DNA from: Bugula neritina
Lineage: Eukaryota; Animalia; Bryozoa
Length of the DNA: 64,000 bases
Direction: 5' to 3'
Assembly: GCA_964035545.1 (NCBI GenBank)
Contig: CAXIUT010000103.1
Coordinates: forward strand, 496,001-560,000
Shown here: positions 26,701 through 31,410 of the stretch, one piece after another
Layout of the letters: every line of letters starts with the position of its first letter
Position numbering within the stretch: position 1 is the first letter of the stretch
The notes under the pieces: generated by a model
What the model was told of the DNA's origin: nothing
Databases searched by the model: none
The model's input: the letters and a program-made list of their open reading frames with translations, nothing else
Program-made: the position numbers and the translations under genes

Positions 26701-29027
26701 GCGAAATATATTACCAAATATCTCATGGCAACGTGCCAATAAATTTAACACAGTAATTAAGCACTGGTGTCTTTGAAGCAGGCATCAAGTTTTGCATAAA
26801 AAAATTTATCAAGTATCTAAACACATGCAAGTGATGAGTTTGGAGATATTATTTAAAACTACAAAAGTTTCCATGCCGCTTGTAAATCAAAAGTGGACAA
26901 TTGCTGCAAACACCTCTTTTCATAGAATGACTCAGTTATTTCTCATATAATTTCAAAGGCATCTAAAATTAGTTATTGCTCTAGCAAAATATAACACTGT
27001 GAAATGGCGCTGCAGATGAGCTTTCTCTTTTAATATGAAAACTGATGATTGAAGAGCAATATAGTCTACTAATAAAATGGGTTTCAGCAGTGACTCATCT
27101 CCACTGCCTGTAAACTATAAAGCTTCAAATCGTATACTGTAGACCCATGGGCCAACTCTAGAACAATAACACAATTCACATGAGTCAGGATTGCTGGTTG
27201 TTAGAGGGGACAGGGGGGCAGGAGAGGGGATGGGAAAATAAAACATCTAAATTCAATAGTAAAAGCGGATGTACAATGCAAAGGTCTTCCAGCATCACTG
27301 GTATTTCCATAATAGCTGCAAGGCGCAAACTTTTGCTGACGGACAATCAGACAGAAAAACTCTTGCAAATAACAAAACTAATATTAGCCTGTGTCTGCTT
27401 CGTATAAACACAAAGAACAAAATTTTGGGAAAGATAACTCCCAACACACCTATCTTGCAACTGGTGCTGGTGCAATGAAATTGAAGGGTTATGTTTCATA
27501 GTCATATATTCAGCTAGTACTTCTAACTGCAAAGAAATAACATTGCAGAAAAAGGTGAAGATGTGAAGCACTGTAGATTTATGGTAAGTTATAATATGCA
27601 TTTGATATTATTTATCTGTCCAGAAAATAATATTATATTATATTTTATTCTACTCAGTAGTACCAACAATGAATATTTTATCATTGTGTATGGCAGTCGT
27701 GAATTTCAACAATGAATAATAATAATATGCATTGTCAATTTTCACAAAGTAGCAGTCTTCAGTCAGCCCTCTCTGGTTCAAGATGGGCATCACTATACAC
27801 ACAAGAGTCAAGAACTTTAATGAGTCCTATCAGCTAACCAGCTCATGAAGTCTACACAGTTTGGTTGCAGACGTTTGCATTTGACATTAGGACTAAAGTG
27901 TTGACTACATGGAGATTTCAACTTCAATTGTTAATCAATTTGTTTTGGATCTACTTGTTACATCTGGCTTACTCTCTCTGGTAGGTTTATTTCATAAACT
28001 TTCTAGACTGATTTTCTTAACTATCTGAAGAGTTTGTTGTGATGCGAAATATTACCAAATATCTCATGGGAACGTGCCAATACATTTAACACAGTAACTA
28101 AGCACTGGTGTCTTTGAAGCAGGCATCAAGTTATGCATAAAAATTTTCATCAAGTATCTAAACGCATGCAAGTGATGAGTTTGGAGATATTATTTAAAAC
28201 TACAAAAGTTTCCATGCCGCTTGTAAATCAAAAGTGGACAATTGCTGCAAACACCTCTTTTCATAGAATGACTCAGTTATTTCTCATATGTTTGCAAAGG
28301 CATCTAAAATTAGTTATTGCTCTAGCAAAAATATAACACTGTGAAATGGCGCTGCAGATGAGCTTTCTCTTTTAATATGAAAACTGATGATTGAAGAGCA
28401 ATATAGTCTACTAATAAAATGGGTTTCAGCAGTGACTCATCTCCACTGCCTGTAAACTATAAAGCTTCAAATCGTATACTGTAGACCCATGGGCCAACTC
28501 TAGAACAATAACACAATTCACATGAGTCAGGATTGCTGGTTGTTAGAGGGGACAGGGGGGCAGGAGAGGGGATGGGAAAATAAAACATCTAAATTCAATA
28601 GTAAAAGCGGATGTACAATGCAAAGGTCTTCCAGCATCACTGGTATTTCCATAATAACTGCAAGGCGCAAACTTTTGCTGATGGACAATCAGACAGAAAA
28701 ACTCTTGCAAATTACAAAACTAATATTAGCCTGTGTCTGCTTCGTATAAACACCAAGAACAAAATTTTGGGAAAGATAACTCCCAACACACCTATCTTGC
28801 AACTGGTGCTGGTGCAATGAAATTGAAGGGTTTTGTTTCATAGTCATATATTCAGCTAGTACTTCTAACTGCAAAGAAATAACATTGCAGAAAAAGGTGA
28901 AGATGTGAAGCACTGTAGATTTATGGTAAGTTATAATATGCATTTGATATTATTTATCTGTCCAGAAAATAATATTATATTATATTTTACTCTACTCAGT
29001 AGTACCAACAATGAATATTTTATCATT

Positions 29028-29030
29028 GTG
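29028..29030. other. Inversion breakpoint with 3-bp microhomology (GTG)
   Basis: The forward monomer reads ...ttttatcattGTG|tatggcag and the reverse monomer reads ...aaatgaGTG|attctatgaaaagag. The observed junction is ...ttttatcattGTGattctatgaaaagag, with no inserted bases. Confidence 0.95.
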
Positions 29031-31410
29031 ATTCTATGAAAAGAGATGTTTGCAGCAATTGTCCACTTTTGATTTACAAGCAGCATGGAAACTTTTGTAG
29101 TTTTAAATAATATCTCCAAACTCATCACTTGCATGTGTTTATAGACTTGATAAATTTTTTTATGCAAACCTTGATGCCTGCTTCAAAGACACCAGTGCTT
29201 AATTACTGTGTTAACTGTATTGGCACGTTGCCATGAGATATTTCGTAATATTTCGCATCACAACAAACTCTTCAGAAAGTTAAGAAAATCAGTCTAGAAA
29301 GTTAATGAAATAAACCTACCAGAAAGAGTAAGCCAGATGTAACAAGTAGATCCAAAACAATTAGTTGATTAACAATTGAAGTTGAAATCTCCATGTAGTC
29401 AACACTTTAGTCCTAATGTCAAATGCAAACGTCTGCAATCAAACTGTGTAGACTTCATGAGCTGGTTAGCTGAAAGGACTCATTAAAGTTCTTAACTCTT
29501 GTGTGTATAGTGATGCCCATCTTGAACTAGAGAGGGCTGACTGAAGACTGCTACTTTGTGAAAATTGACAATGCATATTATTATTATTCATTGTTGAGAT
29601 TCACGACTGCCATAAACAATGATAAAATATTCATTGTTGGTACTACTGAGTAGAATAAAATATAATATAATATTATTTTCTGGACAAATAAATAATATCA
29701 AATGCATATTATAACTTACCATAAATCTACAGTGCTTCACATCTTCACCTTTTTCTGCAATGTTGATTCTTTGCAGTTAGAAGTACTAGTTGAAAATATG
29801 ACTATGAAACATAACCCTTCAATTTCATTGCACCAGCACCAGTTGCAAGATAGGTGTGTTGGGAGTTATCTTTCCCAAAATTTTGTTCTTGGTGTTTATA
29901 CGAAGCAGACACAGGCTAATATTAGTTTTGTTATTTGTAAGAGTTTTTCTGTCTGATTGTCCATCAGCAAAAGTTTGGCCTTGCAGTTATTATGGAAATA
30001 CCAGTGATGCTGGAAGACCTTTGCATTGTACACCCGCCTTTACTATTGAATTTAGATGTTTTATTTTCCAATCCCCTCTCCTGCCCCCCTGTCCCCTCTA
30101 ACAACCAGCAATCCTGACTCATGTGAATTGTGTTATTGTTCTAGAGTTGGCCCATGGGCCTACAGTATACGATTTGAAGCTTTATAGTTTACAGGCAGTG
30201 GAGATGAGTCACTGCTAAAACCCATTTTGTTAGTAGACTATATTGCTCTTCAATCATCAGTTTTCATATTAAAAGAGAAAGCTCATCTGCAGCGCCATTT
30301 CACAGTGTTATATTTTGCTAGAGCAAAAACTAATTTTAGATGCCTTTGCAAACATATGAGAAATAAATGAGTCATTCCATGAAAAGAGGTGTTTGCAGCA
30401 ATTGTCCACTTTTGATTTACAAGCGGCATGGAAACTTTTGTAGTTTTAAATAATATCTCCAAACTCATCACTTGCATGTGTTTAGATACTTGATAAATTT
30501 TTTTATGCAAAACTTGATGCCTGCTTCAAAGACACCAGTGCTTAATTACTGTGTTAACTGTATTGGCATGTTGCCATGAGATATTTGGTAATATTTCGCA
30601 TCACAACAAACTCTTCAGAAAGTTAAGAAAATCAGTCTAGAAAGTTAATGAAATAAACCTACCAGAAAGAGTAAGCCAGATGTAACAAGTAGATCCAAAA
30701 CAATTACTTGATTAACAATTGAAGTTGAAATCTCCATGTAGTCAACACTTTAGTCCTAATGTCAAATGCAAACGCCTGCAATCAAACTGTGTAGACTTCA
30801 TGAGCTGGTTAGCTGACAGGACTCATTAAAGTTCTTAACTCTTGTGTGTATAGTGATGCCCATCTTGAACTAGAGAGGGCTGACTGAAGACTGCTACTTT
30901 GTGAAAATTGACAATGCATATTATTATTATTCATTGTTGAGATTCACGACTGCCATAAACAATGATAAAATATTCATTGTTGGTACTACTGAGTAGAATA
31001 AAATATAATATAATATTATTTTCTGGACAAATAAATAATATCAAATGCATATTATAACTTACCATAAATCTACAGTGCTTCACATCTTCACTTTTTTCTG
31101 CAATGTTATTTCTTTGCAGTTAGAAGTACTAGTTGAAAATATGACTATGAAACATAACCCTTCAATTTCATTGCACCAGCACCAGTTGCAAGATAGGTGT
31201 GTTGGGAGTTATCTTTCCCAAAATTTTGTTCTTTGTGTTTATACGAAGCAGACACAGGCTAATATTAGTTTTGTTATTTGCAAGAGTTTTTCTGTCTGAT
31301 TGTCCATCAGCAAAAGTTTGGCCTTGCAGTTATTATGGAAATACCAGTGATGCTGGAAGACCTTTGCATTGTACACCCGCTTTTACTATTGAATTTAGAT
31401 GTTTTATTTT

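Follow-up and report, generated by a model that had tools for sequence, protein, structure and literature searches.

Why does a satellite array of the bryozoan Bugula neritina, built of units that otherwise follow one another head to tail, reverse its direction at a single point, and what kind of event left that joint? The question is raised by a stretch of 64,000 nucleotides (the window), positions 496,001–560,000 of contig CAXIUT010000103.1 (C112 below; 738,000 bp) in assembly GCA_964035545.1 (216,009,554 bp in 321 sequences). A preliminary description, made from the letters of this window, had noticed a switch of polarity at the foot of a small hairpin and had ascribed it to a short microhomology. 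Self-BLAST shows the window to be a tandem satellite throughout, with a unit of ~1,342 bp, 34–37% G+C and no N; the repeat structure was taken from this comparison, the period of 1,342 bp lying above the 500-bp limit of Tandem Repeats Finder. The window was joined to C112:300,001–500,000, giving 260 kb for analysis, and 187 complete units were extracted, turned to one orientation, aligned, and then compared by blocks. Based on this comparison, we conclude that the switch in the window, called junction B here, probably marks the right-hand end of a genuine inversion, copy-neutral and 199,885 bp long, within a satellite array of several hundred kb.

The polarity switch itself is beyond doubt. 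Positions 1–29029/29030 hold head-to-tail units on the + strand and positions 29028–64000 hold them on the − strand, and the homologies of the two arms overlap at the junction by two to three bases (GTG, 29028–29030) with zero filler. Self-BLAST therefore confirms, at base resolution, the direct join through GTG that had been described, and the hairpin beside it is also present as claimed, with ACAATGA (29008–29014) and TCATTGT (29023–29029) enclosing the loop atatttta. On inspection of both donor sequences, no extended imperfect microhomology was seen around GTG. In the 216-Mb assembly, the 28-mer across the junction has a single occurrence. Beyond the joint, a truncated unit of ~586 bp forms an asymmetric spacer which holds the arms of junction B out of register. 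The features of the window are as follows.

1–29030, + strand: right-hand end of the ~199.9-kb flipped block (C112:325,145–525,029/30), with 21 complete 1,342-bp units plus partials, of the "left-flank" variant type (self-BLAST, motif map).
29008–29029, + strand: inverted repeat ACAATGA / TCATTGT with an 8-nt loop, constant in every unit and here the last sequence of the flipped block.
29028–29030, no strand: junction B, with GTG assignable to either arm (C112:525,028–525,030; self-BLAST, alleles, assembly-wide k-mer count).
29031–29616, − strand: truncated first unit of the right flank, unit columns 0–612 (self-BLAST; haplotype ATTCT...GAGATG, private to the right flank).
29617–64000, − strand: right flank in the original orientation of the array, with 25 complete units and the ends of two more, 98.8–99.1% alike.

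The preliminary description had proposed that the reciprocal junction be sought elsewhere in the array. A partner was indeed found, at the left end of the block. In the polarity map of C112, − units occupy 301–324 kb, 147 + units follow at 326,389–525,006, and − units resume from 525,617. The flipped block measures 199,885 bp and is bounded by a change from − to + between 325,144 and 325,145 and by the change from + to − at 525,028–525,030; the 260 kb contain no polarity switch beyond these two and no N gaps. The left-hand boundary, junction A, lies 170.8 kb upstream of the window and forms a perfect palindrome of 122 bp (C112:325,084–325,205), centred between 325,144 and 325,145. The join there is blunt, shows 0 bp of microhomology and keeps the units in register, and both of its arms stop at alignment column 100/101.

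The distribution of the unit over the whole assembly was followed with a conserved 23-mer, which occurs 148 times in forward and 768 times in reverse orientation. In this motif search, all forward copies but one lie inside the flipped block, and no further polarity switch was seen by unit motif in ~1.2 Mb of this satellite. On other satellite scaffolds (e.g., C82), the copies among those listed or counted are on the reverse strand only. The sole forward-strand copy outside the flipped block belongs to a solo, partial unit (~1.0 kb, 86.6% identity) at ~9,089,230–9,090,223 of the chromosome-scale scaffold C5, which could be a relic or a progenitor of the satellite.

Sequence variants among the units reveal the order in which the array stood before the switch. 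The right flank (525–560 kb) is 98.7–98.8% identical to the left end of the block (325–340 kb), which equals the level within a domain (98.8–99.1%), but the value drops to 96.4% towards the centre of the block, and against the units next to it beyond junction B it is 96.6%. Likewise, the left flank of junction A (300–325 kb) matches the right end of the block (490–515 kb) at 97.0–97.2%, again the level within a domain, compared with 96.7% for the units just across A. For the two complete units that directly precede junction B, the best matches lie 200 kb off, in the flank to the left of A. The same pairing is found with private alleles, defined as those carried by at least 25% of units in each of two groups and by none in the remaining two: the left flank and the right end of the block share 14, the right flank and the left end of the block share 17, and each of the other four pairings shares 0. 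Across 19 type-informative columns, the variant type flips exactly at A and exactly at B, truncated units included.

The mirrored arms, by comparison, are far from identical. At junction A they agree at 96.2% over the first 500 bp, with the first mismatches 62, 65 and 70 bp from the centre, and at junction B they agree at 97.2% in the best register. Within C112:300–560 kb, each variant domain is present once and no mirrored diagonal of near-identical units was found. Since the ends of the block match the opposite flanks, the arms are only 96–97% alike and the domains are present once, we read the rearrangement as an inversion in which nothing was copied. It would also be younger than the variant domains, as these are contiguous only in the order before inversion. 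A fold-back inverted duplication was considered as a candidate and ruled out, because the arms near the junctions are 96–97% alike instead of near-identical.

The alleles at the joint allow the overlap to be judged more closely. It had been claimed that the microhomology exists only if the left unit carried cattgtG, where others have cattgtT, and the right unit gagtG, where others have gagtC. Both polymorphisms exist. However, cattgtT is not the rule in the left arm, where 16 of the 21 complete units of the window carry G, and the remaining right-hand units are not uniformly gagtC, gagtG being found in 14 of the 26 units of the right flank. Along the array, cattgtG is carried by 8 of the 18 left-flank units of A and by 15 of 20 in the terminal, right-hand 25 kb of the block, but by none of the 127 units in the rest of the block and none of the 26 in the right flank; gagtG is found, apart from the right flank, in 9 units in the left 50 kb of the block and nowhere else. 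The right donor almost certainly carried G, since the truncated right unit bears the haplotype ATTCT...GAGATG, which is private to the right flank and linked to G in all 8 units that have it. For the left donor, local frequencies make the G allele slightly more probable than T. Consequently, the overlap comprises GT with certainty and GTG probably, and the claimed dependence holds in part: GT needs the right-hand G alone, and only the third base also needs the G on the left. The further claim that the join postdates both alleles is borne out. Each is common to one flank and to the block end that now lies at the opposite junction, two regions that adjoined each other only in the array before inversion, and since the domain of each allele is contiguous only in that order, both alleles predate the inversion.

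An overlap of this length is what blunt end joining would often give. When all 1,342 × 1,342 possible joins of the two donor unit sequences were taken as the chance model, at least 2 bp of microhomology was found in 18% and at least 3 bp in 6.5% of them. The overlap of 2–3 bp is within the range of both classical non-homologous end joining (NHEJ) and microhomology-mediated end joining (MMEJ), and the caution already voiced in the preliminary description, that a 3-bp match might be due to chance under blunt NHEJ, was justified by the 6.5%. The same description had proposed MMEJ or a replicative template switch, i.e., fork stalling and template switching or microhomology-mediated break-induced replication (FoSTeS/MMBIR). 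The first of these is retained, as the overlap is compatible with end joining, be it classical NHEJ or MMEJ; template switching is not, as no duplication was seen in the 260 kb.

The two junctions differ in how the units meet. Because junction A is in register, B should be an in-register palindrome as well if the inversion were perfectly reciprocal. In fact, the flipped block stops at column 24/25 and the flank begins at column 612, which is out of register by 586–587 bp. The junctions are not reciprocal: modulo one unit, B has lost 911 bp net (or gained 432 bp). Compared with a reciprocal inversion, the 911 bp missing at B (plus any whole number of units) divide into ~77 bp on the side of the block and ~834 bp on the side of the flank, and on the premise that A marks the original break positions, these would be two deletions of ~77 and ~834 bp. 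A duplication of 511 bp from staggered breaks was tried as a candidate, and its putative copies differ at 7 of 508 positions, compared with a median of 6 for random pairs of units of the domain. Since B is out of register and the 511-bp duplication is unsupported, the rearrangement is best described as an inversion with a deletion at one junction. A higher-order pattern of three units was traced over the restored junction, where subtypes a and c are recognized on both sides (15–19 differences per 1,240 bp) and subtype b is not distinct; because of the latter, we do not claim that no whole unit was lost at B.

Taken together, the following history seems the most economical. Two double-strand breaks would have occurred at column 100/101 of two units ~200 kb apart, and the segment between them would have been rejoined in reverse. 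Junction A would have been sealed blunt and without loss. At junction B, the ends would have been trimmed and then sealed by end joining at GT or GTG; whether by classical NHEJ or by MMEJ is indistinguishable, since the overlap is only 2–3 bp. The deletion at B may have arisen during this repair, or later, as an asymmetric "centre-break" deletion of the palindromic junction formed first. The hairpin, a regular feature of the unit, would be located at the joint by coincidence.

Several observations weigh against this account. Two breaks at the identical phase of the unit are expected by chance at about 1 in 1,342, and the proposed history leaves this coincidence unaccounted for. Junction A keeps a perfect 122-bp palindrome and junction B does not, which is odd if long palindromes are unstable. 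The breakpoint at B falls exactly at the 3′ foot of one of the two strong short-loop hairpins of the unit, for which the chance is 0.3–0.9% per side. Furthermore, the evidence for the junctions comes from a single assembly, and the sequence read covers C112:300,001–560,000 of a contig of 738 kb, beyond which the array is inferred from motif counts. The first two of these points would be met if the unit had a specifically cut site, recognized by a structure- or sequence-specific nuclease, or if a single cut had passed through two units paired in a loop of the array, with B as a later centre-break resolution. We regard such a site as unlikely. If it were real, the satellite would offer a case of natural, phase-specific fragility, with an unresolved and a resolved palindromic junction in one molecule.

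The hairpin deserves separate consideration, since it had been proposed to have promoted the break or switch. This proposal found no support: both original breaks map to column 100/101, ~77 bp away, and the stem is weak and present in every unit. As junction A places the breaks at that column, the foot of the hairpin would be the point where a trimmed end was sealed and not the site of the first break. A real inversion in which the hairpin acted at this later step is nevertheless conceivable. The stem would then have stopped a 3′–5′ exonuclease or flap nuclease that trimmed the end after a break 77 bp away, followed by annealing at GT(G) of the MMEJ or polymerase-theta type; or else the dyad-rich first 100 bp of the unit would be fragile and would themselves have caused the breaks. 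Each unit has only two perfect hairpins (stem of at least 7 bp, loop of 3–10 nt), and the joint does lie at the 3′ foot of one of them. With four such feet per unit, a breakpoint exactly at a foot is expected in 0.3% of cases per junction side, and one within 1 base in 0.9%. As single-stranded DNA, the hairpin folds at −4.7 kcal/mol and dominates a 30-nt window (z = −3.2), but not an 81-nt context. However, this is a single event, the hairpin definition was picked post hoc and three distinct breakpoint positions were open to inspection; under a looser definition (stem of at least 6 bp, loop of up to 50 nt), 4.5–10% of positions qualify. The stem consists of only 7 AT-rich base pairs, and the overlapping G and T sit within it, so that a folded hairpin would hide them from annealing. 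At the start of the unit, a cluster of ~75 bp (29568–29641 in the window, and at the same place in every unit) holds four ACAATG/CATTGT motifs in alternating orientation, from which several alternative hairpins are possible; the 93-nt stretch containing it folds at −11 kcal/mol (z = −2.3), and on either side of the cluster lie columns 24/25 and 100/101, which are two of the three distinct breakpoint positions. Fragility of the first 100 bp would suit this arrangement, but the two columns are dependent if one arose by trimming of the other. In addition, the hairpin was found in every one of ~190 units aligned, and ~900 units all carry it, yet there is one inversion. The coincidence of breakpoint and hairpin, with a post hoc chance of about 1–10%, is therefore not significant once these choices are taken into account and suggestive at most, and an inversion shaped by either the stem or the fragile region seems improbable to us.

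Two explanations do without an inversion by breakage altogether. The first is an assembly artefact, i.e., a chimeric or palindromic read or a block placed in the wrong orientation. It gains from the fact that the junction k-mer is single in the assembly and that C112 is apparently a small scaffold consisting mostly of satellite, where assemblies are weakest; the in-register form of A with zero spacer is, moreover, typical of palindromic reads from missing adapters. However, such reads give arms that are identical over kilobases, and here mismatches begin at 62 bp and the arms are 96% alike. Flips introduced in scaffolding or curation leave N gaps, of which the 260 kb have none. Two independent chimeric reads would have to bound one 200-kb block reciprocally, which makes the chimeric read or mis-join named in the preliminary description unlikely. 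Moreover, + and − reads of a head-to-tail array can be joined only via reads that contain the junction, a 3-bp join being too short for an overlap. The tzBugNeri2.1 assembly was built with hifiasm from 132-fold PacBio HiFi data, followed by Hi-C scaffolding and manual curation (PMC11480708), and this coverage also speaks against an artefact. We consider an artefact quite improbable.

The other explanation is FoSTeS/MMBIR, in which a stalled or collapsed fork would have switched strand through GTG and later switched back. Satellite arrays are difficult to replicate, and 2–3 bp of microhomology without filler at B is what such a switch could leave; 3 bp is, however, expected by chance in the fraction of joins given above, and junction A has none. 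Most of all, FoSTeS/MMBIR copies DNA, whereas here no duplication was seen: the arms differ at both junctions to the extent reported, the mirrored diagonal that copying should produce is missing from the 260 kb, and the variant domains, each present once, have block ends matching opposite flanks, as in a cut-and-flip event. A template switch is accordingly highly improbable, and a two-break inversion with loss at junction B is the reading we follow below.

The nature of the DNA in which the inversion lies was also assessed. The open reading frames of the 1,342-bp unit are short (66–110 amino acids), overlapping and without a coherent frame, and Rfam gave zero matches across 6 kb around junction B. 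The unit thus looks like non-coding satellite DNA, and junction B presumably has no function. A metagenome scan with a conserved 24-mer of the unit, which also spans the junction, returned 0 matches. The two arms of the window differ in their homogeneity: units of the right flank (29617–64000) show the high similarity listed above, and those of the left-arm domain (1–29000) are 96.6–97.9% alike, with alternating subtypes. Several pairs of right-flank units, four to six units apart, are 100% identical (e.g., those at C112:549,799 and 555,168, and at 551,140 and 556,509), which suggests recent duplications of several units at a time. Within the flipped block, 2,567 bp of non-satellite sequence at C112:392,646–395,212 split one unit at about its position 444. 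This insertion has imperfect terminal inverted repeats of ~170 bp (71% identity), a G+C content of 33% and zero open reading frames of at least 80 amino acids, and it has the appearance of a non-autonomous DNA transposon inserted among the repeats.

Overall, the rearrangement is of an ordinary kind and unusually well resolved. Standard non-recurrent inversions made by NHEJ or MMEJ show small deletions and 0–4 bp of microhomology at their junctions. The present case resembles them in having one blunt junction and one with a 2–3 bp overlap, with loss at one junction and without templated insertion or duplication, but it differs in that both breaks are at the same phase of the unit, for which random breakage predicts the ~1 in 1,342 discussed above. 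Head-to-head junctions with short or no microhomology, and a zero spacer as at A, are shared with fold-back inverted duplications (breakage-fusion-bridge, replication U-turn) and with FoSTeS/MMBIR; those events, however, duplicate the adjoining sequence and start with identical arms, whereas the arms at A and B come from different variant domains and no duplication was seen. A third likeness is with the centre-break resolution of long palindromes, a fate known for such sequences and reportedly described by Cunningham et al. in 2003 (Mol Cell Biol 23:8740). Junction B shares with it an asymmetric deletion (~77/~834 bp) over the predicted centre, a seal at a short microhomology and a remaining spacer of 586 bp. 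Unlike in such a resolution, the palindrome of the sister junction A (122 bp) is intact, and arms that are 96–97% alike would provide only a weak drive towards a cruciform.

The closest parallels are found in primates. Large inversions within satellite arrays have been validated on long reads in primate centromeres, with inversion polymorphisms of alpha-satellite on orangutan chromosome 20 and macaque chromosomes 5 and 10 (PMC11062924). As in these, a block is reversed within a head-to-tail array, is recognized by a switch of monomer strand, is copy-neutral and keeps its flanking variant layers. In contrast, the bryozoan unit is 1,342 bp long, base resolution is reached at both junctions and the order before inversion can be read, and the evidence comes from an assembly, where that for the primate inversions comes from validating reads.

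The finding matters modestly. Inversion junctions within long satellite arrays have so far seldom been resolved to the base except in primates and a few model plants, and users of the assembly are alerted to a change of orientation over 200 kb in C112. The one possible new lesson is that both breaks fell at the same phase of the unit and that, of the two palindromic junctions, one is intact and the other deleted, though this is a single event. For the satellite itself, unequal exchange likely no longer homogenises the flipped block with its flanks, and the locus would provide a clean example of an array split into compartments beyond mutual homogenisation, in which the order before inversion can still be read from the variant domains.

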